From NCBI RefSeq assembly GCF_006345805.1, contig NC_043017.1:1736001-1800000 (forward strand): a stretch of 64,000 nt of DNA. The letters run 5' to 3'. Shown here piece by piece: positions 379 to 49,149 of this stretch. A model generated the notes under the pieces. That model worked only from the letters and a program-made list of their open reading frames with translations, ran no database searches and was not told the origin of the DNA. The DNA comes from Octopus sinensis (lineage: Eukaryota). Every line of letters begins with the position of its first letter. Within the stretch, counting starts at the first letter, position 1. Made by a program: the position numbers and the translations under genes.

Positions 379-1887
379 CACCCAGAACCACACTGGTAGC
401 TCAAGAGTCAAATTTAGAATTTCTTACTTTTCTGTGAATTGATTTTGACAGAACTTTTCCCAGCTGATTTCCAAACTGTGGCAACACCATTGTTATGCTT
501 TCATTATTCTGTGTAACGTCCTGCCTTTTTTTTTTTTATTTCAGACTCTTTTGCTTTTGGTGGACCACTGTAATAGCTTTTAAATGAAAATATCCCATCT
601 AGACATTTTATTTTTTCAGTAAACGAAGGTTAAGGATACATATTAAACATACATTGAGTATTTATTTAATAGAAAACCATAATGATATTATAACATCTAC
701 TGAAATAATGAATTATTTAACCACATGGGCGCCATAATGACAGATAACTTCAAAAACCATATTAGTCATGGAATCTGTCAATAGTAGCAGGTGCGGTCTG
801 CTGCATCTTTGGAGGTCGCCCATAAGATATCTATCAACACAAAGTGTTGCCCATCAGCATAAACATCTTATTTAATAATTGACCAAAGATTTTTGATAGA
901 GTTAAGATCCGGAGATGCTAGCGGCCACACCATCAATCTTTCACCTTTTTTGCTGTAAGACCTTAGGAATGTATAGGTGGTCCTTGCAGAGTGGGAGGGG
1001 GCGTTGTCAGGTATGAATATGCGATTCCTTAGAAAATGACAATAGTATGTCATCTAGCCAGGGATCCAGTAGGCGGCTGCGGTCACTTTAACCCCTTCAG
1101 GCACCCTGACTTGGCCAACAATTCTATTCCCAATGATACCACCCCACAACATGACTCATCCGCCCTATTGTTGATATCGTAAACGTTGGTGACACTCATC
1201 TCCAAAAGAAATATAAATAAACCCAAACATTTTCCCAACTGTCCGGTTCGTCAAGAGTCGTCCTGGTTTCGTCAATGAACAGAACACAACTCCAGTCTAA
1301 CGTCGTGTACTTTTGGTCTCATCGAAGTCCCAAACTCTTGTGAGGAGGCAGTTTCATAGGTCCTCGCACGGAAGATAAGGTCTCGAGGATGCGATTTCTG
1401 ATGGTTTTCGGTACTTGAGGAAGTTCGGAGGCAGAGAAAATGGTTTTGCATGTTTGACCAGGTTTCCCACGTAAGTTGCGGCTGATATTCCTTAATTCCC
1501 TAGCTGTCACAGTCTTGGAGGTCCCACAATCGGACGTTTCTCCCTTGGCACTCATGTGGCTTAATAATTCATTATGTCAATAAATGTATTATTTTTATGG
1601 CTTTCTGTTAAATATATACTCGATGTATGCTTAATATTAACGTTCATTTTCTGAAAACAAACAAAAAATGTCTAGATGGGCTATTTTGAGTCAAAAGCTA
1701 TTAGCATGGTTGACTAAACTGAAGAATCTAAAATAAAAAAGAAAGGATGCTACACATAAAAATGAAAACGTAACAATGGTGTCGCCACAGTATGCAGACC
1801 AGCTTGGAAGAGTTTTATCAAACTCGATTCACAGAAAACCGAGAAATCCTAAATTCAACTCCTAAGCTATTAACGTGGTTTTGGGTG
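379..1887 (-). mobile_element. Tc1-family DNA transposon, decayed, with ~300-bp terminal inverted repeats
   Basis: Transposase remnants: 1319-1555 (N-terminal HTH-like) and 868-1053 (DNAPSH...WPLASPDLNSIKNLW, matching the Tc1 DNAPxH / SPDLNPIENLW motifs). 379-682 and 1595-1887 are diverged inverted repeats beginning CACCCA; TA at 377-378. Confidence 0.9.
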
Positions 1888-6010: not shown

Positions 6011-7159
6011 CTACACCTGCACCATCTTTATACCTTTCTTTTCTCTTCTTTTATTTGTCCTCTTCTTTTATCTATCCTTTTGTTATACACCTTTCTCAAG
6101 CTTTTTTACCAACCAATACAGTAATCGGTTTGTCTCTTCATTTCGTATACGTAAACACATCTTATTTTGCCTTGTCCTGTGCCTCGTTCTAATATCAGCT
6201 ATTCATTGGTCGGTTCCGTACATCTGATGTCTTATAACTGTCGTTCTTTTCTGTTAATTAATTATTGTCTTTGTATCTCTAATGGCATTGGCATTGCTGT
6301 AAGTTTACTGCTGTTACTATTGTTGCTGCGCCAGTTGTTTATTTTCTTTGAAATTTGGATCGTATTTTTAAAATGAATTTATTCTCGTGTCGGTAATGCG
6401 ACATGACTTCCTTTCTTCTATATCCGTTGTATAATTGTGTTACTTTATTAAGCGGTATACAGACAGAATATAACTGGACGATTTAATTAAAGTTCGGTAC
6501 TGCCAGACCTTGAATCGAAGACTATCCATCAATGAATAATCATTTCATATTATTCCTCTTACTATTTACGTTACATACTGTTGGACATACGCATTGAGAG
6601 TGGCATTGCTGTTGTTGCTATGCAACCGCATTGCGGTTATGTTTTTGCTGTACTGTATAGATAATGTTGTCGAAGATTGTGATGAAACATGGCATTTTGC
6701 GGCAGCCGCTACAGTTCTTAGGCTCTGCTCTTCTTCACACTTAATTCAGCAAAAATGTATTATCAGCTCTGTCCCAGGATTAACATCACCTCATTATTTT
6801 AAACATTGTTTACCTAAGGTTCTATTATTTAATGTAACCTCTATTTTAAGAGGCTGAGGTGTAATTGAGAATGATATAGCTACTATTATGAGTGAGCGAC
6901 AAGAAAGCAGGACGCGGGCGAGAGGTGATATCAATGGTTATTTTATTAACATCAGGTAAGATATAGCTGTGTAGACCTATTGTGAAAGACGTTACAACTG
7001 TGAGCATCGCCACTTTTCTTTCTAGAAAAGGAATGCTAATCAAACGCACGTGTCGTTCTATTTTGAAGACACTGGGGTGAGAATTTGGGGACGACACGAT
7101 TGCTATTTCTAGCAAGGTAACTGACTATATAAAAGCTGCTGATGAGGAAGGCTGTTGCT

Positions 7160-9130: not shown

Positions 9131-9522
9131 AATGAGTATGAAAGCAGCCAGAAGAACCGAACCAAAACTTCCACATCATTGGCATCACAACAAAACATTA
9201 AAGATCGTGATTATACAATCACCTCCTGTAATTGATAAGGAAAGGAACATAATGGCGTGTTTATGTATGCATATACATGTATGTATATGTATGTATATAT
9301 ATATATATATATATAATAATATATATATATATAGATATATATATAATATATATAACATATTATATGTATATATATATATATAAGTATATGCCTGTATAAT
9401 ATATACATACACATACATGTATATGCATATCTATATACATATATATGAGTATATATATATATATATATATCTATATATATATATATGTATACACATACAC
9501 ACGCAAAATATAAAATCATATA

Positions 9523-9560
<38 letters not shown>

Positions 9561-9599
9561 ATTATATATTCAATATACATATATATGAACATAGATACG

Positions 9600-9716
9600 C
9601 ATATATATATATATATATGCATACATGCACAAGCATGAACAATCAAACAGATATAAACGTAAACATGATGCACAATGAAGCATCTCCAAAAATTGCATTT
9701 ATTCTTAGATGTGAAA

Positions 9717-9773
<57 letters not shown>

Positions 9774-9792
9774 CATTATCATCATCATCATC

Positions 9793-9824
<32 letters not shown>

Positions 9825-10103
9825 CAACACCATTATTATTGGCGGTAGAGCTGCAATCATTTTTATTGCAATTATTAATTTAGTTTTCAGTGCATAGATT
9901 CTTCTTTTCCCGTTTTATTTTTCATTTTAACATAAAATTCAAGAAGGAACTTTTTTTCCTCGAAATTATCATGAGTAAAAAGTAAAGAAACAGTTTTTGT
10001 TCATTTCCCCCAACCTTTTTTCTTTATACTTTCGGAAATAGAATTTATGCATAAATATCAACCAGTAAAATAGTTACGAGTATGTTTGTATGTATTTCAT
10101 CAT

Positions 10104-10151
<48 letters not shown>

Positions 10152-10307
10152 TTTATATATTCATATATACATATATTGAACATATACATATATTATATAT
10201 ATATATATGCATACATGCACAAGCATGAACAATCAAACAGATATAAACGTAAACATGATGCACAATGAAGCATCTCCAAAAATTGCATTTAATTCTTAGA
10301 TGTGAAA

Positions 10308-10360
<53 letters not shown>

Positions 10361-10382
10361 TATCATTATCATCATCATCATC

Positions 10383-10414
<32 letters not shown>

Positions 10415-10700
10415 CAACACCATTATTATTGGCGGTAGAGCTGCAATCATTTTTATTGCAATTATTAATTTAGTTTTCAGTGTACATTCTCTTTTTCTTT
10501 TTCCCGTTTTATTTTTCATTTTAACATAAAATTCAAGAAGGAACTTTTTTTCCTCGAAATTATCATGAGTAAAAAGTAAAGAAACAGTTTTTGTTCATTT
10601 CCCCCAACCTTTTTTCTTTATACTTTCGGAAATAGAATTTATGCATAAATATCAACCAGTAAAAAATATTTACGAGTATGTTGTATGTATTTCATCATAT
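9600..10700 (+). repeat. ~590-bp tandem direct duplication bounded by (TA)n tracts
   Basis: catacatgcacaagcatgaacaatc...gtatgtatttcatcat occurs at ~9620-10100 and ~10210-10700, nearly identical. Confidence 0.9.
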
Positions 10701-11105
10701 ATCTATATAATATATAATATATTATATATATATATAATATATATATATAGTATATTATATAGAAGACATATGTGCACATATATATGTGCTATATATAACA
10801 TGCATATAAATATATATATATACCTATATTATATATATTTATATATTTATATATATAGTATATTATACACATATGTACATATACATATATATGCATATAA
10901 ATATGCATTTATATATATGTGTGTGTGCTTGTGTATAGATATATAACGTGTGTGCGTATGTGTACAAATATATTAATATATATATATATTATTATATATA
11001 TATATATATATTCTATTTTAAAATATGTATTTGCACACACGCACAGGCAAGCATATACATACATACGTTAACCATATACACATATGTACATACATTCCTA
11101 CATAC

Positions 11106-16149: not shown

Positions 16150-16249
16150 NNNNNNNNNNNNNNNNNNNNNNNNNNNNNNNNNNNNNNNNNNNNNNNNNNN
16201 NNNNNNNNNNNNNNNNNNNNNNNNNNNNNNNNNNNNNNNNNNNNNNNNN
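16150..16249. other. Scaffold gap (100 N)
   Basis: Run of N. Confidence 1.
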
Positions 16250-19880: not shown

Positions 19881-20088
19881 ACAAACAATTATAATTACTG
19901 TGTGTGTGTGTGTGTGTGTGTTTGTATATATAAACATACTTGGACGAATGTAGATAGACATATGCGGATAAATACGTATGACAGGCATACACCACGCACA
20001 GAGATGTGTGTGCGTGTATATATGAACGGGTGTGTACGTGTGTGTGTGTATATGTGTGTGTGTGTGTACATATATACATAATCATGTT

Positions 20089-20121
<33 letters not shown>

Positions 20122-20231
20122 TACCGGAGTAAACACATAAATGTGAAACAAGGTGGAAAAAAAAGAGTACTCAAATACCAGGGGTAGAGTAATATGCTTT
20201 ATTTCAAAGCAACAGAAAATTCAACAAAACC

Positions 20232-20267
20232 TGTTACTCTGAGTTTCACGTTCCCGTTCGTCGGACA
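20232..20267 (-). ncRNA. Variant minimal hammerhead ribozyme (CCGACGA core)
   Basis: Minus strand: tgt-CCGACGA-acg ggaa cgt-GAAA-ctc a gagt-A-aca. Stems I, II and III can all pair; U4 is replaced by C. Confidence 0.55.
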
Positions 20268-20654
20268 ATTTTCTGCTGCTTTGAAATAAAGTATATATTT
20301 ATATAGACAGATTTCTACATTTATCATTGCTTTGTTTTCGAATGTTTGCTTACTTATGTGTTTGGATGTATGCACGCGGGGGTGTGTATGTGTGTGTGTT
20401 AGTGCGTGTGTGTGTGTGTGTGTGTGTGTGCGTGCGCGCGCGCGTGTGTGTGTGAAGGTTATTGTTTTTTTCTCGGAGAGAAAAGAATGTTCCCTTTTCG
20501 CTTTGTGCGCACAAATGTCAGCGTGCATACGTGGAAACTTATATATATATATATATATGTACGCACCCAATTGTGTGTATATCTGTATGTATCTGTATAT
20601 GTATAAATATGTACGATTATAAATACATTTGTATATATATATATGTATGTATAC

Positions 20655-20724
20655 CTTCGCTCTCCTGAAGACCCGCCAACAATATCAAAAGACACGTTAG
20701 TGCGATATAACCGGTCCCTTTCAT
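20655..20724 (-). CDS. Signal-peptide exon, gene B (MKGTGYIALTCLLILLAGLQESE + phase-1 intron)
   Basis: caactATG start, K at position 2, hydrophobic core, donor AAG|GTATAC at 20654, and upstream acceptor ttactgttag| at 20751. Paralogous to the 29901-29973 exon. Confidence 0.72.
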
Positions 20725-21183
20725 AGTTGCTCAATAAGTTCTGCCTCTTTCTAACAGTAATTTTACACTGAACTAGATTATTTCGAAACTACTATCATTT
20801 CCTGTATTTATATATACACCCAGTCAGTCTATACTGACCTATATGTATACTTATGAGTGTATATGGATGCGTGATGTATATACTGTTTGTGTATTTACCT
20901 CCCTCTATGCTACACTCCCACTCGCTGTTTACTTATATACGCATTAAGTTTGAATGCATGTGTGTAGGTGACATGCGATGCGTACAGTATGAATGTATGT
21001 ATGTGTATGAATGTATTTATGTATATGTATGAGTATTTATAACTCACTGCCTGTACTATCTCTCTGTATATATACGTGCTCTATATTTCATACACACACA
21101 CACACACACACACACCACACACGCACACAAACATATACCAACATACGTACATACAAACACACACATATGTGTGTGTGCATATG

Positions 21184-21219
<36 letters not shown>

Positions 21220-21226
21220 GTGTGTG

Positions 21227-21261
<35 letters not shown>

Positions 21262-21624
21262 GTATACTCTCATTTCTTATATATATATTCAATTACGTAT
21301 GTGCGTGTGTGTCGGTGCGCGCGCGTGTGTTGTATATATATGTGTAGATATGTGGTATGCGTAACGGGTGTATTCTTTTATGTGGGTTTGGGCCGGTTAT
21401 TCGTTTAGTGATTCGTTCTCCCGTCACCGCTGCCTGCGATAATCTCATACCCGAATCGCAGAGTCACGTGACTGCAAAAGAATTTTATAAATGCCTTCAG
21501 CGTCCCTCGTCCTTTCCAAACTCTTTTCTCTCTCCCTCACCGTCTCACATTCTGCCGCATTCACAGAAGCACTTTGTCTCCAGCGCTCTATGAGCTTCCA
21601 CACACACACACACACACACACACA

Positions 21625-21658
<34 letters not shown>

Positions 21659-21812
21659 CAGTACGGCAATACACATACATATATGTATGAATGGGTGGTA
21701 GGATGTATGGGTCAACGGCTGGATGGACGAGCGCGTCTGCGTGTGTACAGATATAAGTATATAGATAGGGATATTCCAAGAAAAATACGCATATGCATGT
21801 GTGTGTGTTTCG

Positions 21813-21846
<34 letters not shown>

Positions 21847-22632
21847 CTGTGTGTCTGTGTGTCTGTGTGTGTGTGTCTGTGTGTCTGTGTGTGTGTGTCT
21901 CTGTGTGTGTGTGTGTGCCAATTTATGTGTGTGTGTATAATAGACGTATCATATCGTATGATATCTGTAACACAGTCACTTCGAAGTTTGGGACAGTAAA
22001 AACGATGGCTAAACTGGTCGACACTTCGAAGTCACAGTCAGCAATATTCTTGTTTATGAACAAATTTGTACTCTGCAAAAGTAACCTCAGATAAATGCGA
22101 AATTACTTTTGCTATAATTAAACATAATAGTAAGAGAGAGAGGGGGGGGTAAGCTGTTATTTTTCTTTGACTTCAGATGTACTTTTACTTGTTTCAGTCA
22201 TTTTCACTGTGGCCATGCTGGAGCATCACCTTTTAATCGAGCAAATCGACCCAGGACTTATTCTTTTGTAAGCCTAGTATATTCGGACGTTAATTTTGAT
22301 CTTGGATTTCGAAAGAAAAGGGTTTGAAACTAGGAAACCCAGACGTGCCTACATGCTGGCCCTCAACTGGTGCACCTTTATGACAATTATTGACATTTTC
22401 TATTATCCTAGATATTGGTCTCAAATTTGGCACAAGGCTAGAACCTTTGGGGTGTATATAATCGGAGTGGTTCGCGTTAACAAGGGCAGCTGACCGTACA
22501 AACCAAGCCAAATCAGATTGGAGTCTGGTGCAACACCTCAGACTACCAGCCCTTATCAAACCGTCCAAAACATGCCAACATGGAGAACTGACGTTAAAGG
22601 ATTGTGTTGACGATTATGATGATTATCACACA

Positions 22633-22677
<45 letters not shown>

Positions 22678-22680
<3 letters not shown>

Positions 22681-22910
22681 GGAGAATTTGTTTTTGTAGA
22701 TACACCTGAATTTGAAGCACGTAGTTGTTTTTAGATATTTTTATTCGCATACATACCGAACCGGTTTCCACAGTTTTCTTGTTGTTGTTTATCGATGTCA
22801 GAAATGTATATAAAACAATGGGATTTTAACAGGGTTAATAGAAATAAATGCATTTAAAAACAACTACACATTTCTCAAATTCAGGTGCATTTTCAAAATC
22901 AAATCCTCAT
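22678..22910. mobile_element. Diverged MITE-like element
   Basis: cacctgaatttga..gtagttgttttta at ~22703-22735 is inverted at ~22850-22888. Confidence 0.55.
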
Positions 22911-23498
22911 ACTACTTATTCCTGCGGCGAAGGACCGCGCTACCCTCCATATACATGTGTATTTGCTTGTGCGTGTGTTAGTGTGTGTGTTTGTTAATAT
23001 GCGTGTGTGTGTGTGAGTGTATCTGTTTGCATGTGCGTGTGTATGTGAATATCTAGATATATATTGCTTAGTTTGTGTCTTTGTCTATTTGTCGTCCACC
23101 ATTGCTTAACAACTGGTGTTGGTGTGTTTACGTCCACATAACGTTGAGGTTCGGAAAGGAGATCGGTAAGTAAGTGCCTGGATTAAAATATAAGCACTGG
23201 CGTCGATTCTTTGCACAGACAATTCTTCAACTCGGTGCCCCAGTATGGCCACAGTCTTTTTGATTAAAGCAACTACCATATATAATTATATATATATATA
23301 TGAAAATTAATTGTTATCGCCATATTAATATGACATTCTTATAGATATAAGAATAATCGCTGCCATGGTCAGCTCCATGAGGCCACCGCCATCAAGATAG
23401 CTATTGATACACGACTGTATCCATTATAGCCTTCGAACAAGGGAGGTCAGCCGCTTCACACTGCCAGTCCGACAGCTACAGACATATACATACACACG

Positions 23499-23536
<38 letters not shown>

Positions 23537-23637
23537 AATTTATAATAGATAACTTTCCTCTATTTACATAATATTGAGGTTTTTTGTTTCTTTTGTTATC
23601 TTACCGTTTTACCAATATATATATATATATATATATA

Positions 23638-23667
<30 letters not shown>

Positions 23668-23668
<1 letters not shown>

Positions 23669-23928
23669 CAAAGTGAGTTATCTACAGTAGCGGTAACACA
23701 TCGTGACGTATATTTGCCATTTCAATATGATCATAAGTTGAAGACGGGAAGGATGACTTCCCTTTGCAAATACTGACAGGACACAGAAAGTGTGTCTATG
23801 GCCAGCTGGAGGAGTGTGTCCTCCTGGGGCTAAAAACTACAGTAGCATCCACCCTTAGGGGTTAGCCATATTGAAATGGCAAATATACGTCACGATGTGT
23901 TACCGCTACTGTAGATAACTCACTTTGA
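23668..23928. mobile_element. MITE with perfect 62-bp TIRs and TA flanks
   Basis: 23668-23729 is the exact reverse complement of 23867-23928; TA on both sides. Confidence 0.92.
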
Positions 23929-24082
23929 TATTTATCATTGTTTGATTTCACTTTTTCAATATCAGCGACAGTGGACGCTGGAAAAAGTATAAGTATTTGT
24001 GAAGGAAATCTAATTCTCGCCGACAACTGTGATTGTCACACGCTGACGAGAGGTCAATACCTCGAAACTCGAGTCCGTGTGT

Positions 24083-24247
24083 ATCATAAGTTGAAGACGG
24101 GAAGGATGACTTCCCTTTGCAAATACTGACAGGACACAGTAAGTGTGTCTATGTCTATGGCCAGCTGGAGGAGTGTGTCCTCCTGGGGCTAAAAACTACA
24201 GTAGCATCACCCTTAGGGGTTAGCCATATTGAAATGGCAAATATACG

Positions 24248-24251
<4 letters not shown>
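24083..24251 (+). repeat. Partial direct duplicate of the 23668-23928 MITE
   Basis: Matches 23730-23892 and stops in a (TA)n tract. Confidence 0.88.
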
Positions 24252-24288
<37 letters not shown>

Positions 24289-24595
24289 TTATTCACTTAT
24301 GTATATATACATATATACACATATACTTATCTACATATTTGTCTTTCAGCCTGTCTCTTCCCCACCTCTCTCTCTCTCTCTCTCGCCCTCGCTCTCCCGC
24401 CATATATATGTGTGTGTGTGTGCACATGTACCCCACCACACACACATATATATATATATATATATACGAATGTATGTATGTATGTATGTATTGTTATGGT
24501 TACTGTAAACTGGGAAACGGTCCTCAATCCAAGGTCGTGCCGAAGTATATAATAGAAAGTCGTACCGAGGGTTTATTTTCTCCTCTCAACCACTA

Positions 24596-24840
24596 TCTAT
24601 ATATAAAGATGAGAATGTGTGTGTGTGTCTGTGTGAATGCCTAAAACTTGAGAACTACACAATCAATTTCATTCAAATTTTACACATGCTTTACTTAGGG
24701 TCCATAGAGTGTCAATGTTTAACTTCTTACCTAGTGCGAGCCCACAGCAATATCACATCTCCACTGTTTCAGTATTACGTGTCAAAAGTGAAACAATAAC
24801 ATCAGATACTTTCAATTTAATACTGAAACTATAACACGGA
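24596..24840 (+). mobile_element. Possible non-autonomous Helitron/HINE-like 5' portion
   Basis: Starts A|TCTATATATAAAGATGAGAATGTGTG, a typical 5'-TC Helitron-like start; no 3' CTAG hairpin found. Confidence 0.45.
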
Positions 24841-24913
<73 letters not shown>

Positions 24914-25222
24914 AGTATTCTCTTACTCTTTTACTTGTTTCAGTTATTTGACTGTGACCATGCTGGAGCACTGCCTTTAGTCAAGCAAAGGTCGCGGTCT
25001 TAAAGGGACGAAAATATTTTGGCAATTTAAATTTACATGTTGTAGTGAATCTAACGGTTTTTGTGTGTTTCTTAAATGGCTTCTAATCATAAACCAAAAC
25101 ATAGTGATTCTTCAAAAGAGAGCGATACCAGGTTAAAAAAAGTTTTGTGATCGAATCATTTCGCTCGGATAAAAATTGAAAGCAGTGCCCCAGAATTGCC
25201 ACAATCTATTGACTGAAATTAA

Positions 25223-26218
25223 ATGAATGACAGAAAGTATATTATAAGGAATTGTAAATCATTGAACAATTTTGTGCATTGTAAAATTATAACCAATTTA
25301 TTGCAGATATATATAGAGAGACGGACTCAAGAAAACAGTTCACATAGGAACAGATTTTTAATTTTAAAAGTAAGGATTGCTTTCTCAAATACTAAAAATC
25401 TCTCACAGATAATTGCCTCCCATAACAATAAGCTGCTAAATAAGGTCTCGTCACCCATGAGCAGTGATACCGCCCTGTCAAATTCCAACATAACATATAG
25501 TAATAATAATAATAATAGAAATAGCACAGATATTAGCAGCCTTCATACCAGCATTGGCGTTAGTAATAGTAATAAGGATAAGAGCACTGGCCTGGTCATT
25601 AACGGAGGGGGTCTCAACAATAATAGTAGCAGCGTTTTTAACAACAGTAGTTTTACGGGCAATAACAATCACAGCATTCCCAGAAACAGGGAATGTGCAG
25701 GCGTTATTGCCTTAAATAATAATGAAAATAGGTTGAATAGTATCGAATCCAGCAGTAATTTTTACAACCATCATAGAAATAAGAACGCTGTATTAGTATC
25801 GGAAACTAATCCCAATAGATTAAGGTTCTTATCAAATAACTGTAAACTTAGAAACTCCACTTACCAGTGCAAAATTTCTACTGGATCCGATGTCTACCTC
25901 TATATTGGCGCAACTTCCTCTAAATTAGCTACAAGGATATCAAATCATTTTTCCACGTTCCCTGATAAGAGTAAACAGCACGCCACGGGGCTAAGCAAAT
26001 TAGTCTGGCGTTTGAAGAACGCAAATTCAACCTTTAAGCTGGAATGGTCAATATTATCGGTGTCCTTACCGTTTGATAAGGGCAGAAAAATCTCTGCCCT
26101 CTGTAATTTCGAACTCTTTCATATCCTGTTTGCCCGAGGCCAAGTAATAAACTCGATTGTCGAGAGATCTTTCAGATGCTTGCACTGGAAAAAGCATACC
26201 TTTCACTCATACCAATGA
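25223..26218 (+). mobile_element. Penelope-like element: 5'-truncated ORF with GIY-YIG endonuclease
   Basis: AFSNTKNLSQIIASHNNKLL; STYQCKI...LYIGAT..KLATRISNH; LSKLVWRLK...LEWSIL; LCNFE; RCLHWKK. All match the Penelope/Poseidon-type C-terminus. Confidence 0.88.
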
Positions 26219-26781
26219 AGTCTAATATAGATAAACCCTGGATTTCCTACAAAATTAAAATGTGATATCTCATCCCTTTTAGTTTATAAGACTTTCTCAT
26301 AATTGCTAAGAACTACTACCAATTCCAGCAGTAACCTTGTCTCTTGTCATTACTATTGTGGACTCCATCCGCCCTCTCCCTCTTAAGTTGACACATTCGA
26401 ACACACAGACACAGTCTTTTCGCCTCCTGACCGTTAATTCTTTCTCTCTGCCTTCTACACACACATTCACGCACTCACAGACACACACACACATATTAAG
26501 GCAATTTTACACACTCATACATGCGAGCACTCATTCATAAAATAAATCAAATATAAACACCAGTCATACAGAATACATTCCCTCACTTTAATTTTCCTTT
26601 ACCTTCCTTCTCCAACCTTGATTGAACCCTTGAACTATTTTAACTGACATTTTCCCCTACTTTCAACCAATCTGGCGTCACACCCTATAAATAGACATTA
26701 TTTATCATTATCTCTATGGGCTCCTCGTGAGCGGTCATCGAAAAACCTGTTGTGCATTTTGTTGGAGAATTAAGTTCCTGG

Positions 26782-26867
26782 ATTTTCCTGAAGAGAAAGC
26801 TGCATAATGGACTCCTTATTCATTCGGAATTAGGGATTTTGCAGACTTCGAAACATATGTCGAAAAT
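26782..26867 (+). ncRNA. Type I hammerhead ribozyme in the Penelope pseudo-LTR region
   Basis: attttc-CTGAAGA-G aaagctgca...tgcagactt C-GAAA-C atat GTC-gaaaat: complete core, 6-bp stem I, extended stem II and palindromic short stem III. Confidence 0.8.
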
Positions 26868-26944
26868 AAAATAAAGGAATTTTGTTAAATCATCGTTCAG
26901 CTCCATTCTTTCCTATACTTAATATATATATATATAAACCAGCA

Positions 26945-27805
26945 GAGATACTCGGAGTTATAGCAAGGCCATGTAGGGCGACATGGAGTTAAGTACAGGG
27001 TGGTGTTCATGTAAAGAGTTCAGGCCACTTGAGGTCAAGGGAGGCTTTGATCAAAGCGGTCGTCGGCATCTTCACCATCTCGTCTGGCAGCTTGTTCCAC
27101 GGATCCGCAACCCGGACGGAGAAAGTTCCTCTCCTTCGATTGAGATGAAATCATCGCAGGTAGAGCTTTTCGGATGACCCCGCAGCCGACGCTCTGGAGC
27201 AGGAGTGAAGAACAGCTCTTTCGAGGTTACACTTTCCGCTTATGATGTTGTGGGCGAGAATGAGATCACCACGGCGGCGGCGTTTTTCAAGAGAATAAAG
27301 GTCGAGCGTCCTCAGCCTTTCTTCGTAGGACAATTTTTGAGACCATGAACCATGCGGTTAGCCAGCTTCTGGACTCTTTCGAGATGCTGTATGTCTTTGA
27401 GGAGATAAGGAGAAGAGGCTTGAATCCCTACTCCAATATGGGTCTCACCAGCGTGACATAGAGTGGTAGGAATATGGCTGCTGTGAGCATTCCGAATGAC
27501 CGTCGAATCAAGAACAGAATTCCGCGTACTTTGTTGGCAGCATGGACGCACTGGGCCGAAGGCGAAAAGGAGGAATCCCCCAAGATACCAAGGTCCTTTA
27601 CCTGATCGGTCCTCTCCAGCAGCAGACGACCCGGCTCGAAATCAAGTTGAGTTGCAGGAGGAGAGCCAACAGGCAGATGACAGCACTTTGACACGTTCAG
27701 ACACAGGTCCCATTCGTTAGATCACTTCCAAATTTGGTGGAGGCATCGACGAAGATCCTCTATATCACCGCGAGGAGCGACCAGTTTGATATCGTCGGCA
27801 AATAG
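26945..27805 (-). mobile_element. CR1/L2-like LINE 3' fragment (RT C-terminus)
   Basis: LFADDIKL...KCCHL...VKDLGI...LVRPILE...LERVQK...SYEERLRTLDLYSLEKRRRRGDLI...WNKLP, with frameshifts. Confidence 0.9.
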
Positions 27806-28558
27806 TGGTTGAGAGGAGAAAATAAACCCTCGGTCCGACTTTCTATTACATACTTCGGCACGTCTTTGGATTGGGGACCGTTTTCTAGTTTACAGTAACC
27901 ATAACAATACATACATACATACATACATACATACATTCGTATGTATATATGTATGTTTGGGGGGGGGTACATGTGCGTGTGTGACCGACCATTACTTGAT
28001 TTCAAGTAAAATCACTATATTTTATCCGATTTCTTTCGCACTCGGCAAATTCATCATTTACGCTTCAAAGATTTCTCTTTTACGAAGTGATACGAAGAAA
28101 TGTGGTCTGTACTTTGGGGATTAACGGTAAGGAATTGATTGTCTCCCTTACACTGTAAGTAACAGTCAAATGCTGATTGTCTCCCTTACACACCAAGCAT
28201 CAATGCTGTTCGTTCTTCTTTCTCATACGTGACTTTCATTGATAAAAACGCTTTCATGCGGTTGTGTCGGGTACTACGAGAAAAATAAGTATATAATACA
28301 ATACGCTTCAACTAAGATATAGGATTCCTAAAGTCTACTGCAATTCCTAATGTCTACGAATGTCTACTGCATAGTACAGGTGCGATTGCTATTATTTACA
28401 CACACACACACACACATATATATGGCGGGAGAGCGAGAGCGAGAGAGAGGGAGAGAGAGAGGTGGGGAAGAGACAGGCTGAAAGACAAATATGTAGATAA
28501 GTATATGTTTATATATGTATATATACATAAGTGAATAAATATGTTATATATATAATAT

Positions 28559-28591
<33 letters not shown>

Positions 28592-28746
28592 GTATATATT
28601 ATATATATATATAATATATATATATTATATATATATATTATATAAATTATCTTGTATATATATATATTGGTAAAACGGTAAGATAACAAAAGAAACCAAA
28701 ATACCTCAATATTATGTAAATAGAGGAAAGTTATCTATTATAAATT

Positions 28747-28790
<44 letters not shown>

Positions 28791-28816
28791 GTTTGTGTGT
28801 GTTGTGTATATATATA

Positions 28817-28864
<48 letters not shown>

Positions 28865-28892
28865 TTATATATATATACTTATACATATAATA

Positions 28893-28973
<81 letters not shown>

Positions 28974-29900
28974 TATACATATATATATATATACATATAC
29001 ATATATATATAACCACTGGGCCATTGCGCCTGCACATATTCGCTTATTACTGTCCTTATTATCCCTTATATCCATGGTCCTGAATTGTTTCGTTACACAT
29101 CTGTGACCTCTTCAGTATCCTTTCCATCCATGTATAGCCTCCTGTTCCACATAGTCCAGTCTGTCCTTCTATGACCTGGATCCTTATCTGTACATGCGTT
29201 TGCATCTAGATGTGTGTGTATGTGTAAATATGCTTGTATGCGTGTGTGTTCGTTCATCACTCTGTGTGTTCTACATGTGTGCTCGCGTGTGTATGGGCAT
29301 AGGTTTAAGCTCTACACAATATCCGTGCCCTTTATATTGTTATTATTGGAGAAAAATACACTATAGCGGGCAAACCGATAGACATGCGCAGATAAGGATA
29401 TACACCATAGGAGAACAGAATGGATTAAATGGAGAAGGAGCATACACGGGGACGGAAAGTGTCACTGAAGAGGTCACAGATGTGTGATGAAAGATTTCCG
29501 GACATTTGTCATAGGAAGAACAGTAATATATACAGAGAGAGCGCGGAGAGAGAGAGAGAGAAAGAGAGATACAGATTTTACGTAAACAAAATGTTGGAAA
29601 TAAACACGTGATCTAAGGTATAATGCGGATAAAAGCAAAAAGATTTTTAAATCGTTTTTTCTTTTACTTTTTATGCTCATTATATTTTCTCAGCAATTTA
29701 AACAATAAGGACCTAAGAAAACGACTTAAGATTAAAAAAAAAAGTACTAGTTGCGTATTGGGTCGATCTAATCGACTGACCCCGTCCCCGAAAATTTCGG
29801 GCTTCGTGCCTAGAGCAGAAAAGAAAGTATATTATAGAAGGCTTCCATATGAGTGAATGTGTGTGAGTGTACGTGTACAAGTGTATATATTTATACATAC

Positions 29901-29973
29901 CGGCTTGTATCTGGTGAAAACCTGTGATCAAAACGAGAAGGCATATAGTTACGAGTGAACCACTTCCTTTCAT
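29901..29973 (-). CDS. Signal-peptide exon, gene A (MKGSGSLVTICLLVLITGFHQIQA + phase-1 intron)
   Basis: aaatcaccATG context, hydrophobic core ending IQA, consensus donor CCG|GTATGT at 29900, and a TATA box ~110 nt upstream. Confidence 0.75.
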
Positions 29974-30016
29974 GGTGATTTCCTTACTGTCTTTTCTTGT
30001 ATCAGAAATTTCACAG

Positions 30017-30204
30017 TGACTCAATGTTGCGGGTTCTTTTCCAATTCGTGAATCCCGACCTCGGTGTCTCTCGTTCTTTATATACCCATTGACTCACGTT
30101 GTAGTTGTGTATATTACGCATGCAAAATATATTATGCATGCATAATATATTGTGCACGCATAATATATTGTGCACGCATAATATATTGTGCATACATAAT
30201 ATAT
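30017..30204 (-). promoter_or_regulatory. Putative promoter of gene A
   Basis: TATATAAAG at 30076-30084, TGA(C/G)TCA AP-1-type sites at 30017-30023 and 30090-30096, and an 18-bp near-palindromic tandem array at ~30113-30204. Confidence 0.55.
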
Positions 30205-30629
30205 ATCTATGTGCGCATATTTGCGGGGAGACGTGTATTTCCTATATAAATAGAGACAGTAAATAATATATATCCAGAGAGAGAAAGAGGGAGAGAGGAG
30301 AAACAGATTTTACATAAACAAAATGTTGGGAATATACACGTGATCTAAGCTATAATGCGGATAAAAACAAAAAGGTTTCCTTTTACCTTCAATGCTTATT
30401 ATAATTTCTAATCAGTTGAAACAATAACCACCTTAAGAAAAAAAAATATATCAACGCCCATGGCGAACGTGACAATTTATTTGTATAACCTGTTTCGTTA
30501 CTTATTTTGACGAAATAACATTTGATACGTTTCTGATTTCCCATCGAAGCACAAAGGATTAAATAGTTAAGGAAACAACTAAAGCGATGTTAGAGCTTGA
30601 ATTTTACAAAGCACAAAAGTTAGCACCCC

Positions 30630-31165
30630 GGGCGAAATACCTAGCGATATTTCATCTGCCGCTACGTTCTGAGTTCAAATTCCGCCGAGGTTGACTTTGC
30701 CTTTCATCATTTTGGGGTCGATTAAATAAGTACCAGTCACGCACTGGGGTCGATGTAATCGACTTAATCCGTTTCTCTATCCTTGTTTGTCCCCTCTGTG
30801 TTTATCCATTGTGAGTAGTAAAGAAATAAGTATTTCGTCTGCCGTTACATTCTGAGTTCAAATTCCGCCGAGGTCGACCTTACCGTTCATCCTTTCGGGG
30901 TCGATTAAATAAGTACCAGTTACGCACTGGGGTTGATACAATCGACTTAGTCCGTTTCTCTATCCTTGTTTGTCCCTTTTGTGTTTAGCTCCTTGTGGGT
31001 AGTAAAGAAATAGGTATTTCGTCTGCCTTTACGTTCTGAGTTGAATTCCGCCGAGGTCGACTTTGCCTTTCATCCTTTTGGGACCGATAAACTAAGTACA
31101 AGCTACGTACTGAGGTCGATCTAATCGACTGGACCCTCCCCCAAAATTGCGGGCCTTGTTCCTAG
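30630..31165 (+). mobile_element. Tandem array (~182-bp unit, ~3 copies) of a Nin/Deu-domain SINE fragment
   Basis: tttc.tctgcc..tac.ttctgagtt.aattccgccgagg begins at ~30650, ~30833 and ~31017. Confidence 0.85.
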
Positions 31166-31486
31166 AGAAAAAAAGAGTTTGAATATTACCGTATTTTATA
31201 GTTAGTAAGAAGAATAAAATCTAGATACAAAAGAAGCTGGACTTGAACCAGTCAGCATTTGATTCAATTATCAACTACAATTTTGACAAATCTAAGCATA
31301 CAGATGTGGCTTTCTATTTTAAAGAATAAAACATAATTAGCGTTTCATTTTGATTTCCTGTGTTGACACAGACCTAAAATTCAAGTTGTAGAAAACGCAA
31401 TGGTGTATATATAGTGGATGACAAGTACAACACGCGGATGACCATCACTTCGCTAGTTGCGTGTGCAAGTGTATGAGTTTTTATAT

Positions 31487-40458: not shown

Positions 40459-40493
<35 letters not shown>

Positions 40494-40499
40494 GAGAGA

Positions 40500-43400
40500 T
40501 AATTTTTTATTGTGGCCACACAGGGCTAAACACAGAATAAAAATGGACGAAATACAATGTAGAGTTTTTTCTTTTCGAGGTGGGATGGGTGGGACACGAA
40601 AAAATAAAAATAAACGTTCAATCAATAGGGATCTGTGGGTTGTGTGGTGTATAAAAAAGCAATATATATATATATATAAAGTTCACAGTCTAGGTGTAGC
40701 CTTGGAAAGAAAAACCTACAAAAAAGACCAAGGTCACCTCAGACAATTCGAAAAAGAACACACGAGTAAGTCGCCTTACTTCTCGTTGTCTCTTTTGGTT
40801 ACAGATTTACGCTTAAAATAGTGTCGTCTTTCACACTGACCATTTTTGCCACTTTCACCCACTTTTTATTAAAACATTCGTTCGACAAAGCCTTCCTCTC
40901 TATTCTCATCCTCCTTTTCAAGTGGTACTTGAAAAAATTGACGAGAAACTGACCAGAGAGGAAGGTGTGTTTTTTGCAGTCCTTGCAAACGCGTCCACCA
41001 CACACATTCTTTCGCCGTAGCCATCAGCGTAACGAACCCTGTTTTCCCTTCCCGTTTAAAGGAAAGTGATGGAACAATATTCACGATAGACTCGGCCGAT
41101 AAGCGGGCCCATCCTACACGCGACAACAGCTGTTCGACGAAGGTCCACAGCTCTGAAATATCTGGACACAGCACGAGCGCGTGCAGAACGGTTTCGTCGC
41201 TCTGACCGCATCTCGGGCAGGTCGGTCCGGTGATGGTTTTCGAACCGTGCCTGTAGCTCTTCTCTCGAACAGGTAGGGCGTCTCGATAGCATTGCCAAGC
41301 CAGGGATTTCTGGAAGTTATCCATAGTCCCCGGCCCGAAAAGTCGTCCTGAACAGGCGGGTTAGGAATTTCTCGTCGACGCCCAGGTTTGCCCCGAGTGT
41401 GTCGTCGGACCTCCCCTCCACTAGTCCTCTATAGAACGCTTTAGTCGTTTGTAAGTTACACAAGTTTGACCCCGGTCGGCAGAGCTGCTGTAGAGCTTGG
41501 CGACACTCTCGGTGCCAATCGCCCAGTTTCGGTCTCTTCTTGATCCACGTTTGCAGTTCGGTCAGTGAGACGAGCTGGGTGAAGGCGCGCCTCACAAACG
41601 GCCCCCACACCTGTTCACCGTCGTCGATGAAGTTCCAGAGATGTCGCAGTCTCAGAGCATGCCTGCGCATCATTAACTATGGCATGCCCAGTCCTCTATT
41701 CAACGGATGTTGACAGCAAATGGACTTCATCACCATCGGAACGCCACCCTTCCACAGGAAGCGGAAGAGTATGCGTTCCAGTTTGGCGATGGTGACGTCG
41801 GGACAAGGCACGACGGTCAGGCGGTAATCGATGACGGATGCGATGTACGCGTTCGCCACCTCCGCCCGACCTTTTAGAGACAGCGTTCTCTCGGCCCATG
41901 TTTGGCTGAGAGCGACCACTCTACTCGTGATCTCGTCCCAGTTCTTATCCATTTGGAGGTTCGGACTGAACCAGACCCCGAGCAATTTAACCGGTCCGCC
42001 CGTCCAGCGTCCCACTACTGAGCCGCAGTCGGACAGCATGGGCTTGCTTCTCCAAGTGCCGAGTAGCAAATCCACTGACTTTTCCGGGTTAATTTTCGCT
42101 CCCGTCACCGTTTCGTATTTTCTTAGTGTCTCGCCTATCATCTGGATGTGTTTTTTGCTCGACACTATGACGGTGACATCGTCCGCATATGCCGACACGC
42201 TCGTCCCGCAACCCAGTTCCCGTGGGATGCCCCTCAGTGTCGCCAGCTTCCGCAGTAGCGGCTCGAGAGTCAATACATACAGAAGCGCCGACAGGGGACA
42301 CCCCTGACGGACCGAACGCGTGATGTCAAACGGTTTCGACAGGTGACCGTTCACCCGAATCACCGATCGGATGCCGCTATACAAGGCAGCGATCCAACCG
42401 CGGAAGACGGGACCGAAGCCAGCCGCCCTGAGGACGGCCGCCAAGTACCGATGGTCGACCCTATCGAAGGCTTTAGACTGATCCAAATTGATCAGCGCCC
42501 CACCCATGCCAGGATCCTTAACTACCCTGTCCACAATGTGGCACATCAGATGGAGGTTGTCCATCATGTTTGCGCTCTGTCGACAAGTTTACCAATGACA
42601 AGCGCCAACCTCTCGGCTATTACTTTGGCCAAAATTTTCAAATCTGCGTTGAGCAGAGTGATGGGGCTGAAATTATCTATAGAATTCCCCTTGTTTGGGT
42701 CTTTCTTCAGCAACGTCACTGCACCTCGGCTCACGAAACCGGGGATTCTCCCGTTTTGTTGCCAGTTGCAGTAGACTGATGCCAAGAGGTCGCCAAACAA
42801 GTCTGGCATTTGACAATACAGCTCGTAGGGTAAACCATCCAATCCAGGCGACTTATCCCTCGCGCAGCCCGCCATCGCATCCCGCACGTCAGCGGCTGTG
42901 ATGGGACTTTCACAACACTCCGCTTCTTTTGCCGAGAACCGCGGCATGTCGGTCAGGTAGGCACTGAAATCCATCCCGCGTTCCGACCCACCACTCGCAC
43001 CAAACAGTCGAGCAAAGTGCTGTTGAAAGGCCTCACACATCCTTTCGGATTCGAGTAAACTGCATCCCTATTGATCTTTCAGAGACCGAATGGTGGCTCT
43101 GTTGCCACGTTGCGCCTCCGCTACCCGGGCCTCTCGCGCAGCTTCGATCCCTTCGTTCCTTAAGGCACGCATTTTAGCTCTGACGACGCAACCTTCGTGC
43201 TTGGCGTTGAGGTGTTGGTCGAGGGCCATCCTCGAAGCCAGCACGTTGGTTGCGCTGCCAGTGGTAAGTGACACTTCTAGTTTCTTAACCAGGTCTCCCT
43301 CTACCCTATTTCCAACTATCGCTAATTCCTTGCTAAACCTAATTGATTCCGATTTTATTGCCATTTTCAGGGCGAACCACCAGCGGTTGTTAACGACGAC

Positions 43401-46400
43401 TCCCGTCAGCGCCCTCTTAATTACCTCGCTAATCCGGTTCCTGTAAACCTGTCGCACTAAGAGCGACCTGTTCAGTTTCCAGTAACCGGGACCCTGTCTA
43501 TGTGTCTTATCTAAGTCGAGCGTACACGTCACAAATTTGTGATCTGTGTAGCTGACTATTTTAAATTGTGGACATCCTACACTATCCCTATCCGTTGTCC
43601 TGCATAGAATTCTATCTAGATAAGATCTCGACGATCCGACGCGCTTTGTCTAAGTCCACGTTGGCACGTTCGGATGGTCGAGTCGGAACGTGTCAGACAA
43701 ATGGAAACGTCTGATAGGTCTTTGAGGCACTTACACCCCCTTCTATTCCTATCCATTCCCACATAATCTAGATGCGTGTCCAAGGTAGCGTTCCAATCCA
43801 CTTCTAACAGTAAAGATCTAGACGTACCCAGGAAAACCTCTAGACGTCTGAAGAAATCCGCCCGACCCGTTAAGGACGGTGCATAAACTGCCATCAGACG
43901 GAATGCACACCCATTTCTGCCATTCACGTCCAAGACAACCAGCCTACCCTCCGGATCTAGGAATATTGTTCTTACTTTTACGTTTAAACTCTTTCGAAAA
44001 AGCACCGCGGTACCTCCACCACCCATGTTCGGCAGACAGGGAGAAAAATAAATGTCGATTTGATCGCCAAACATGGATGCGAGGGCCCGCGGCTTGTTGA
44101 GTCTGGTTTCACTGATAGCTACTATATCCACGTTCAGTGATTGATGTCGTTTAGAAGGTAACCTTGTTTCCAAGCCGACGCCAAGCCACGCGCATTCACA
44201 CATTGACGTTTAATTGACGTTTAAGAAATTTGTGTTTCACACACTACATTGGAAGAGACAAGAGCCAAGAGGGCAGGTCACTCACTCATTTCGAAAGTTT
44301 CAGTTTTTTCTTCTTTTGTAGTGTCTTTGAGGAGGTGTTTGAATAGTTTTTTTGATAGGTATCTTTGAAACCCCCTACCGCATTTGGAAATATGGTTTTC
44401 AGTGTATGGTGTTGTGTTTGTTTTATGTGTACAATTCTTATGAGTTTCGGTGGTGTAGTGCGCGGATGATTATTTGTCTTAAAGTCATCTTCACAGATGT
44501 TCTTGTTGGATGCAATGTAATCCATTAGTTTTTTATTGTCTGTGTCTATTGCTGTTAGTTGTGTGTGAGGTTTTGCGGGGTCATTGAGTTTTTGATTGTC
44601 TAAGGGGATGCTGTCCGGAGTTAAATATCACCCTGCTTTACTTACTTGTTTGGTGGGGTTTTTTTTATCTTTTCCTTTTACCCCCTGTGGCTATTTGCCA
44701 TTCTGTTTGCCATTCTGTCGAACTTTCCTCGTTGGACGACGAGTCCGACGAATCAGAAGGGGGTAAAGGCAAAGCTTTTGCGTTAATATTTATGTTTATA
44801 GAAATTGTTGATGTTTTGTGCGGTGTTGTGTTGTTGTGGTGTTAGGGGTAGAATTTGTCTTCCCGTCACTGTTTTCTGTTTGCTTAGTTGTCGTCCTTGG
44901 TGCTGGTGTTGGTCTATCTTTTGGTGTTAGTTCAGTATCTTTAATTGGTTGCGACGTCAACGATGAATGTGTTGGTGCTGTTTCTTTTCTTAGTGATGTT
45001 GTTGGGGTTTGTTTGCTGGTTTGTTGTTTTTCTTGGCATTGTTCCATAATTGAGTGTGTTTGTGTTGGTAACAAGGGTTTTTTATTTGTTTTCTGATTTG
45101 TTCTTTCTTGTTTTTTCTCTCCTAGAACGCACTTTGCAATTAAATGTTCTGGGCTGCCACAGTTGTAGCATCTTGTTTTTTTTCCCTTCTGCTACAACAT
45201 ATAGGCTTTACCCATTTTCTAAATGAATCCTATCAGGTAGGTTCTCGATAGAGGACCCATCAATCTGGATGGTAACTTCTATCGATTTACCACCCCAATT
45301 GTCATTTTTGTACACGGCGATTTCTAATATATTTATCGTTTTTAAATGGTAACATATCGCCGATGTTATCCATTTGGATGGTATATCTGTTTGGACATTT
45401 TTAATTCTAATTTTGCTCACTCTTTGTCCTTTGTAATACTGAATCATGATGATTTCATCATTTTGTAAAGTCTCCGTAGAGTGAGCTTTTGCCACTTCCT
45501 GGTCAGGGAAGCGGACCACCACTATATTAACCTGGGGACCCCAGTTTATAAATTCTTTTTTTTACATGATGTTTTTTGCACACTTTTCTATGTCCGTTTT
45601 TGTTATCTGTTCATTTTGTCTTTTGTTTTTTTTTAATATAATTTTATATATAATTGTCTTATTTTCTATTTGTTCCTTTATGTGTTGAGGTGTATGCAGC
45701 ACTAAATCCTTCCCTTGGGTTGTAAAGAGTGCTCTCGTTTCTATCAACTTTTCATTTGTAAATTTTATTATTTCTTTTTTCTGACGCAGGGTGTCAGCGA
45801 AATTCACTGTTCTATTCTGGCAGTTGTTGTCGTTGTGTGTTTTTGTTGTTGTTTTATCCGAAATATTCTTGGACGTGGCTTTTTCAGGTACCATTGTTTC
45901 TGATATGTTAATAATATCTTCACTATTGGATGATATAATATTTATTTCATTTTTGTCGTTGTTATTGTTGTTGTTGTTGTTGTTAATGGTATTTGTGTCA
46001 GTTACATTTTTATCATTTATGTTGGTGGTGGTGGTGTATTTAGCAGTGGTAGTTTCGTTGTTGTTGTTGTTGGTGGTGGTGGAGGTCGTGGCAGGGCTGT
46101 TAACGAAAGTGGTTACAGCGTTCACTTCCACGTCACTCAGGTTTGTCTTTGATGTATTGCTGGTCATGTCTGTTCTATTCGAATGCGTGTGCGTGCAGGA
46201 GTTCTTTTTTTCTCCTAGCGTTTCAAGGCTAGGGAAATGCTGTCCCATGAAGGAATTTGACCAGCGTTCGACAATAAAATTTCTCGACATTAAAAAATGT
46301 CGAGAAGAAAAATATACAATTTAATTAGGGTTGAAACTGCCCCTAGGGGCGAATTCCTCCCTTGGAAAAGTACTCAAACGAAAGTTGGGTGCTGTACACA

Positions 46401-46492
46401 CCTTATTTACAAAAATGTACACAAAATGTGGGTTATAAATAGTCAAAATAAACGATTACCTTCGGAGCCGAAGTGACAACACGTCAGTCGAT
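40500..46492 (-). mobile_element. Near full-length L1/Tx1-like non-LTR retrotransposon (frameshifted)
   Basis: ORF1 remnants at 44286-46290 include the zinc knuckle CYNCGSPEHLIAKC (~45130-45180). ORF2 has APE (43616-44203: DIVAISET...SDH), RT (VRQGCPLS, AYADD) and a C-terminal CPRC..ETVLH domain. 3' end aataaaaaatt at ~40500. Confidence 0.93.
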
Positions 46493-46497
46493 ATATA

Positions 46498-46541
<44 letters not shown>

Positions 46542-46546
46542 TATAT

Positions 46547-46592
<46 letters not shown>

Positions 46593-48150: not shown

Positions 48151-49149
48151 TCATATATAATTTTACGCCCAGTTATCGTACCCAAAGCTAGGTAAGGTAT
48201 GTTATCAATTTATTTAGAATAATTCCCTATAAAACTCAATGGAAAATAATTTGTCTTAATACTAATAACTTACTAATAGTAATTACTAATCAAATTTAAA
48301 GAACATAATGGGTCGGAAATAAATACCACAAGATTTTTTTCTAACAGTAATAAGACACAAAAACAGAAGAGTAGGGATACTGTATTAAATGAGCCCCTGG
48401 ATATTACTAGTACAGATTACGTTAGCCCCAGAGTGACAATAGATACTCTGATAGGATTTGAACTTAGAACATAAAGAGACAAAAGTAAATTCTAGAGTCA
48501 GAGAAAAGTGGGACATTAGGAGAGAGAGAGAAGGAGGCAAAGAGAAAGAAATGAAAAAGAAAGAAAGAAACAAAGAAGGGAGGTTTTTTTTACATGGAAT
48601 CAAAAGGAGAGTGGATTTGAACTTGTAACGTTAAGGTAATGGACGATGAGATGAAGTAAAGAATCTAGTCAAGTAAGAAAAGTAATAATAATTATGGTGA
48701 TTAATAATTAATGAAGGAGATTTCAGTATCGGGATTTCAGTGTGGAAGAAAGTAGAACAATCAATGATGGGATTAAGACCTGAATGACTTAATGAAACCA
48801 TAAAGGTCACAGATATGGATATTTCAGCTCACTGGGGACCTACATTTGATCAGCCCAATGTAGAGGTGTGTCACCATTTTCAGCCACTGCGTGAGAACAG
48901 GCCAGATGCAGAGATGTAAAGCCATTGATATTTTGATGGTTAAGCTGAAAATAAGAGAATAAAATCATTTAAAATGGGGGTCTAGAAGGGGAGGAAGAGA
49001 AGAATTGAAAGAAAAACACTTGGAGAAAGAGAAGATGAAGAATCAGGTTAATTAAACAAGTGGGGTGATTGGTTGGGGAAGTACTTAAGTGAGGGTTATG
49101 TTGCATTTATACACACATATACACGCATTATACACACATATACACGCAT

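Follow-up and report, generated by a model that had tools for sequence, protein, structure and literature searches.

Paralogues in cone-snail toxin superfamilies and among neuropeptide precursors keep their signal sequence while the mature region diverges fast. At loci of the UGT1A and protocadherin types, tandem alternative promoters and first exons are spliced to common downstream exons. Among metazoan secreted-protein genes, phase-1 introns are enriched near the sites of signal-peptide cleavage (PMC1626468). We analyzed a 64,000-nt stretch of Octopus sinensis DNA (hereafter the window), in which two short units lying ~9 kb apart on the minus strand, A and B, have features of each of these systems. 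On balance, we read A and B as two related 5' gene modules that are now, or were until recently, functional and that would accordingly be, or have been, transcribed.

The likeness to cone-snail toxin and neuropeptide families is that the signal exon is the sole recognizably conserved part of A and B and that the two units form a tandem pair with a shared orientation. Unlike those families, A and B have only two members, and no mature-peptide exon, cysteine framework or dibasic sites were found for them; they also show no sequence similarity to any such family, either in the protein collection that we searched or among the open reading frames (ORFs) downstream. With UGT1A- and protocadherin-type loci, A and B share homologous same-strand first exons, each with its own TATA box and with nothing downstream duplicated; their matching phases would also allow both to be spliced to a single shared exon. 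However, the variable exons of those loci encode large domains, whereas A and B would encode a signal peptide only, and the 20.6 kb of the window that lie downstream of B yielded no common exon. Like the metazoan signal-exon genes (PMC1626468), A and B each have a short putative first coding exon for a signal peptide with n-, h- and c-regions, and about 5 residues or fewer separate the predicted cleavage site from the phase-1 end of this exon, where a GT donor follows. Downstream exons and a mature protein are known for those genes, while A and B are known from putative first exons alone.

Anatomy and homology of units A and B

Both units have the structure described in an earlier note on this DNA, namely minus-strand reading frames of 73 nt from an ATG at 29973 (A) and of 70 nt from an ATG at 20724 (B), both lengths being 1 mod 3, so that each frame reaches its GT in phase 1 (Table 1). 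The good start-codon context claimed for them is borne out by an A at -3 of both ATGs. The donor contexts are CCG/GTATGT in A and AAG/GTATAC in B (a slash marks the exon or cleavage boundary here and below). In A, the stretch from the TATA box to the start codon is free of ATGs, and the sole upstream ATG in B is located 5' of the predicted transcription start site. RNA structure predictions revealed no excess stability in the blocks on either strand (z-scores -0.18 to +1.08), and no Rfam family was detected anywhere in the window.

The two peptides are identical in register at nine of 23 residues (M1, K2, G3, G5, C11, L12, L13, L15 and G18), as the residues listed as common to both had suggested, and ATGAARGGNNNNGG occurs at just these two sites when both strands of the window are scanned. 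When the peptides were compared with the window by tblastn, A and B were each other's best non-self match (E 5e-4), with the runners-up at 0.23 and 0.16. We also collected the ATG-initiated ORFs of both strands that have 23 or more open codons, 1189 in total, and scored them against one another in fixed register using BLOSUM62. The A-B pair scored 55, compared with 24 for the next-best partner of A and 19 for that of B, and the remaining high-scoring ORF pairs were all microsatellite or repeat copies. A score of 55 was reached in none of 1,000,000 trials when the residues of B were permuted and in 172 of 1,000,000 when they were permuted within the n-, h- and c-regions only, which is a deliberately conservative null. 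A crude signal-like filter based on Kyte-Doolittle hydropathy, which also picks up the real signal anchor of the DUF229 protein encoded elsewhere in the window, was passed by 37 of the 1189 ORFs, 18 of them not low-complexity, and A-B ranked at the top of the 153 pairs among these 18. After correction for 153 pairs, the conservative permutation figure is ~0.03, with the independent evidence described below not yet counted. By these comparisons, A and B are true paralogues on the same strand, with a similarity beyond chance.

The homologous block runs from -47 to +73 and continues for ~20 nt into the intron (about -47..+93), and a TATA motif lies upstream of it. In a diagonal plot anchored on the ATGs, the zero diagonal passes through the coding part, and a block on the -1 diagonal at about -47..-24 is the only upstream match on a near-zero diagonal. 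This block would lie in the 5' untranslated region (5'UTR); it starts at -46 in A and -47 in B and is identical at 18 of 23 nt. At the start of the intron, ~17 of 21 nt are identical, as counted by eye on the alignment. Beyond these limits, no significant alignment was obtained in the 300 nt upstream (92 of 500 shuffles scored equally well) or in the first 300 nt of the intron, where only CA repeats aligned. Translations that read through the GT are unrelated between A and B, and the homology stops at about the splice donor.

A TATATAAA box follows GGGT in both units, at -111 in A and -90 in B. This motif occurs 22-24 times per strand, and the chance of finding it within -125..-80 of a random position is 1.3% per site, or about 1.6e-4 for both units. 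Neither the TATATAAA boxes nor the 5'UTR block played any part in the earlier reader's choice of the pair. Taken together, the alignable segments present themselves as conserved islands at putative functional landmarks (the TATA box, the proximal 5'UTR, the coding part and the donor) with diverged spacers between them.

Table 1. Positions of the features of units A and B in the window
Feature	Position	Strand	Description
TATATAAA box of A	30077..30084	(-)	TATAAA core starts 109 nt 5' of the ATG; context AATGGGTATATAAAG
Conserved 5'UTR block of A	29997..30019	(-)	TCACTGTGAAATTTCTGATACAA, -46..-24 from the ATG; initiator (Inr)-like TCA at its start
Putative first exon of A, coding part	29901..29973	(-)	Peptide MKGSGSLVTICLLVLITGFHQIQA plus first base of the next codon
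Putative phase-1 donor of A and first ~20 nt of intron	29880..29900	(-)	G/GTATGT; alignable with unit B
TATATAAA box of B	20807..20814	(-)	TATAAA core starts 88 nt 5' of the ATG; context CTGGGTGTATATATAAAT
Conserved 5'UTR block of B	20749..20771	(-)	TCAGTGTAAAATTACTGTTAGAA, -47..-25 from the ATG
Putative first exon of B, coding part	20655..20724	(-)	Peptide MKGTGYIALTCLLILLAGLQESE plus first base of the next codon
Putative phase-1 donor of B and start of intron	20635..20654	(-)	AAG/GTATAC; continues directly as a TA/CA microsatellite

Both predicted peptides have a canonical signal-peptide layout as judged by eye rules and the Kyte-Doolittle filter, although their hydrophobicity is partly how the pair was noticed. 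The n-region is positively charged, with Lys2 in both peptides, and neither peptide contains Asp or Glu among its first 20 residues. The h-region is uncharged and 12 residues long in each (SLVTICLLVLIT in A, YIALTCLLILLA in B), and a core of this length fits a signal peptide and is too short for a membrane anchor. When the -3/-1 rule was applied by eye, it fitted I-T-G/F in A and L-A-G/L in B, in both cases after the conserved Gly18, and in A it also fitted I-Q-A/ at the end of the exon. The predicted cleavage is most likely right after Gly18, which would then occupy the -1 position.

The coding parts of A and B are identical at 13, 16 and 10 of 22 sites for codon positions 1, 2 and 3, respectively, so that position 2 is better kept than position 1 and position 1 better than position 3. 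Leu13 is retained via two synonymous changes, CTC to TTG, and the substitutions within the hydrophobic core are all conservative (L/I, V/A, V/I, I/L, F/L and T/A).

Downstream sequence and annotated proteins

Several observations weigh against the reading of A and B as functional gene modules, the first of them concerning the sequence downstream. We scanned for phase-1 acceptors and ORFs downstream of both units, and neither A nor B could be assigned a downstream exon, a stop codon or a poly(A) site in the window. For A, the first strong acceptor is at 29810, 91 nt past the donor, and is the 5' end of a short interspersed nuclear element (SINE) copy, so it was rejected as the start of a second exon. 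The candidate 48-residue exon that would follow it (29809-29665) is itself SINE sequence, as shown by matches of 29743-29829 to both 31095-31181 and the tandem units of 183 nt at 30648-31130, and of the SINE tail (29546-29721) to 30277-30441. B has a single compact completion, which uses an acceptor at 20279, 20276 or 20273 and would add 26 residues, with a stop codon overlapping AATAAA (exon 20279-20202). This segment lies inside a 105-nt palindrome of a dispersed repeat and is not a credible exon.

Broader comparisons of the downstream sequence gave the same type of result. When 20.9-29.9 kb was compared with 1-20.6 kb by tblastx and blastn, only SINEs and simple repeats matched and no paralogous sequence was found. 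Between 1.6 and 28.3 kb, the minus strand has 42 unique ORFs of 40 or more amino acids (aa); concatenated into a query of 2707 residues, they had no protein match at E <= 1e-3, and Pfam searches of selected ORFs returned transposon domains or nothing. There is no annotated exon in the 20.6 kb downstream of B within the window. A run of 100 N, which represents an assembly gap, lies downstream of exon B at 16150-16249, and a hidden exon is possible there.

The palindrome that covers the rejected exon of B (20192-20296) is near-perfect over its 105 nt and is predicted to form a long hairpin (-40.5 kcal/mol, z = -6.95). It shares the strand of exon B and is situated ~360 nt farther downstream, and the stretch at 20047-20272, which adjoins and partly overlaps it, has an 87% identical copy at an unrelated position in O. 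vulgaris, in the region upstream of the DUF229 gene (locus 6109-6330). The palindrome is probably a mobile or foldback repeat resembling a miniature inverted-repeat transposable element (MITE), and it could conceivably serve as a hairpin-RNA precursor.

The units themselves and the DNA between them provide further points of this kind. The donor of B has no G at +5 and is fused with a microsatellite, and the interval from A to B is mostly transposon sequence. The proportions of non-synonymous and synonymous differences (pN 0.36 vs pS 0.56) correspond to a dN/dS of ~0.47, which over 22 codons is not significant. This ratio and the codon-position pattern both go in the direction that would be expected from purifying selection, with 22 codons being too few for significance.

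The protein searches were likewise negative. A concatenated query against a collection of 5.8 billion proteins, which includes proteins of O. sinensis, O. vulgaris and O. bimaculoides, returned no protein that shared three 5-residue words with either peptide, and a string search of the literature found neither peptide. Since the DUF229 cluster in this collection has no members from run assemblies, the protein negatives speak for three annotated proteomes rather than for raw transcriptomes. In addition, the collection shows DUF229 alone within +-10 kb in all three species, which indicates that its gene calls are annotation models and not raw ORFs. The O. vulgaris annotation, made on an assembly with repeats masked, drew on Iso-Seq data from developmental stages (sets PRJNA718058, PRJNA791920 and PRJNA547720) and on bulk RNA-seq from adults (PMC10700109), and despite this transcript basis the collection holds no protein bearing these peptides. 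A well-expressed gene would probably have been called by such an annotation, although it could overlook a short gene that lies among repeats and is restricted to certain tissues.

Competing readings of the locus

Under the reading that we favor, A and B would be diverged tandem paralogues, each having a core promoter with a TATA box, followed by a short 5'UTR and then the first coding exon. RNA polymerase II would start ~30 nt downstream of each TATA box, and the first exon would encode a cleavable endoplasmic reticulum signal peptide of ~18 residues plus 5-6 further residues, ending in phase 1 at the GT donor. The signal peptide would be made up of an n-region, MKG(S/T)G, and a 12-residue hydrophobic core, with cleavage after Gly18. 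The first exon would then be spliced to one or more downstream exons, and the peptide would direct the product into the secretory pathway and be removed.

The earlier note had proposed that the two exons are tandem paralogues or alternative first exons of one locus. Paralogy is supported by the same-strand arrangement and by the similarity beyond chance, and the two versions appear about equally likely. In one, each unit would belong to a small gene of its own, and the downstream exons of these two genes would be short, evolve fast or have been overwritten by repeats. In the other, they would be alternative promoters and first exons of a single gene, whose common exons are short or lie past the left edge of the window. 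The further proposal that the exons encode small secreted products holds for the signal-peptide layout and not for the gene body, for which there is neither an assignable downstream exon nor a protein match. To speak of a "hidden cluster of orphan secreted-peptide genes" overstated the case, given two units only and no mature peptide found, and the gland, venom, immune or hormone roles put forward for the products are pure speculation. If A and B are transcribed, they would represent unannotated secreted-product genes in a cephalopod genome, where small lineage-specific secreted peptides are poorly catalogued, and paralogy of a promoter plus signal exon would flag genes that are missed by homology-based or RNA-guided annotation in repeat-rich DNA.

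The main rival is that A and B are relics, that is, 5' remnants of a tandem-duplicated secreted-protein gene whose downstream exons were destroyed or separated by insertions of SINEs, long interspersed nuclear elements (LINEs) and foldback elements, such that transcription or productive splicing of the blocks has ceased. The missing downstream exon and annotated protein are what such decay would leave, and the surroundings are of the appropriate kind: SINE copies lie 91 nt past exon A and ~300 nt upstream of its ATG, and a 5.3-kb element, which is an inverted duplication enclosing a multi-copy ORF, takes up a large share of the DNA between A and B. In addition, the signs of selection do not reach statistical significance. 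Nevertheless, at ~39% nucleotide divergence A and B have both kept the ATG, the frame, the hydrophobic core, Gly18, the phase-1 GT and the TATATAAA box while their flanks have become unalignable, and uniform neutral decay would not produce such conserved islands. The intactness of both copies is in part a selection effect, as it is the reason that the reader noticed them. With both sides considered, we regard decay as unlikely, though as a possibility to be taken seriously; if it did occur, the locus would be an instance of ordinary gene decay under transposon bombardment.

A narrower proposal is that A and B are all that can be recognized of an octopus family of small secreted peptides that is specific to this lineage, its signal exon and core promoter being conserved and its mature exons too fast-evolving or too short to be identified. 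We consider this doubtful. If true, the family would be expressed in a tissue that is under-sampled by current annotations and so would be invisible to them.

A slightly more doubtful explanation still is that the ~140-230-nt block is part of a low-copy repeat or an exon-like piece carried by a transposon, in which case it would be expected at further genomic sites that have no relation to a gene. The region is repeat-dense, and the homologous unit is short with sharp edges, as a mobile or captured fragment would be. However, a nucleotide profile of the module found no third copy in the window (nhmmer; best other match E = 3.1, with nothing below 3). None was found either in ~128 kb of other octopus DNA, which consists of the O. 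vulgaris and O. bimaculoides DUF229 loci together with four loci from O. sinensis in which copies of the element lying between A and B are present. The earlier note had itself raised a match of both segments to a dispersed repeat family, and two copies are all that the window and these ~128 kb contain. Since known SINEs recur many times in the same ~190 kb (the window plus the other loci), the A/B module is not a high-copy repeat, nor is it part of the intervening element. Moreover, the two units have the same orientation, whereas the intervening repeat is inverted. These DUF229 loci extend to the equivalents of window positions ~36.5 kb in O. bimaculoides and ~49.8 kb in O. vulgaris, with A being located at 30 kb. 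A weak tblastn match of peptide A in the O. bimaculoides DUF229 locus (MGNSNSIGYTCLIVYTTGFFQ, E 0.009-0.03) was rejected, as it overlaps a copy of a common "TTGFFQF" repeat.

Finally, the units could be unspliced micro-ORFs that arose by coincidence, as T-rich codons make hydrophobic ORFs common in AT-rich DNA (hence the 37 that pass the filter) and the GTAT at both putative donors is the first repeat unit of the TA/CA microsatellites that follow, but the permutation and empirical nulls, the collinear UTR block and the paired TATATAAA boxes make this very unlikely, and the read-through ORFs have nothing in common after the GT.

Repeats around A and B and other elements in the window

The inverted duplication between A and B pairs 23494-24596 with 27802-28789 through three collinear arm segments that are 88-91% complementary and enclose ~3.2 kb. 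Between the arms lie an intact 331-aa ORF on the plus strand (25223-26218) and minus-strand ORFs that resemble the tail of a LINE. The 331-aa ORF has an N-rich middle and, by eye, a YIG...R...H-like motif toward its C-terminus; it is unannotated here and has no Pfam domain. On other O. sinensis chromosomes, relatives with 57-67% identity have been annotated, with misleading names that stem from low complexity, and the 1.6 kb around the ORF recurs at 68-77% identity in the loci of these relatives. Because these surroundings recur on other chromosomes, the ORF belongs to a dispersed element, which is probably an uncharacterized foldback or Penelope-like mobile element. We considered the 331-aa ORF as a handle on the local annotation and on orthologues and rejected it, since it is unannotated at this site and its relatives are copies of the dispersed element on other chromosomes.

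Exon A is flanked on both sides by full or partial copies of the same SINE in the same orientation (29546-29829 and 30277-30441), and three tandem 183-nt SINE-like units lie farther upstream at 30648-31130. The 5' end of the SINE carries a strong acceptor-like site, TTTCTTTTCTGCTCTAG|G. Directly 5' of the TATA box of A is a minisatellite (30110-30203) with a unit of ~15-16 nt, which is partly self-complementary and, when translated, reads as HNILC repeats.

The only long intact ORF in the window is a single-exon DUF229 gene of 640 aa on the plus strand (58068-59990; Pfam PF02995), which is an annotated O. sinensis gene (assembly GCA_006345805.1, chromosome record CM016879.1) and the only annotated gene within +-10 kb. 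Its location places the window at about 1,736,001-1,800,000 of this record, where the ATG and donor of A fall at ~1,765,973 and ~1,765,900 and those of B at ~1,756,724 and ~1,756,654. Its orthologue models in O. bimaculoides and O. vulgaris are 518 aa long and start at an internal Met, with coding DNA that is 93% and 98% identical, respectively. Directly after the DUF229 stop codon is a fragment of a Penelope-like retroelement, with a GIY-YIG domain at 60690-61445 (+) and an ORF resembling reverse transcriptase just upstream at 59991-60341 (+).

A frameshifted LINE on the minus strand at ~40.4-46.6 kb contains Exo_endo_phos, RVT_1 and zf-RVT domains, with an upstream ORF in which a CCHC-like knuckle was recognized by eye, and a second LINE-like piece is present at ~49-52.3 kb. 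Both pieces are missing from the orthologous sequence of O. bimaculoides, which jumps from window position 40463 to 46589 and from 48998 to 52339, and they thus look like insertions that are confined to the lineage of O. sinensis and O. vulgaris.

Toward the left end of the window, a tandem duplication with a period of ~590 bp (9515-10213 and 10099-10806, 92.5% identical) sits in a low-complexity region of trinucleotide type with strong negative GC skew (8-10 kb). The window also contains two relics of Tc1/mariner transposases, one at 700-1600 (-), in which DDE_3 was confirmed at 871-1053, and one at ~36.4-37.5 kb (+), which was recognized by eye only from an HDNAPA motif.

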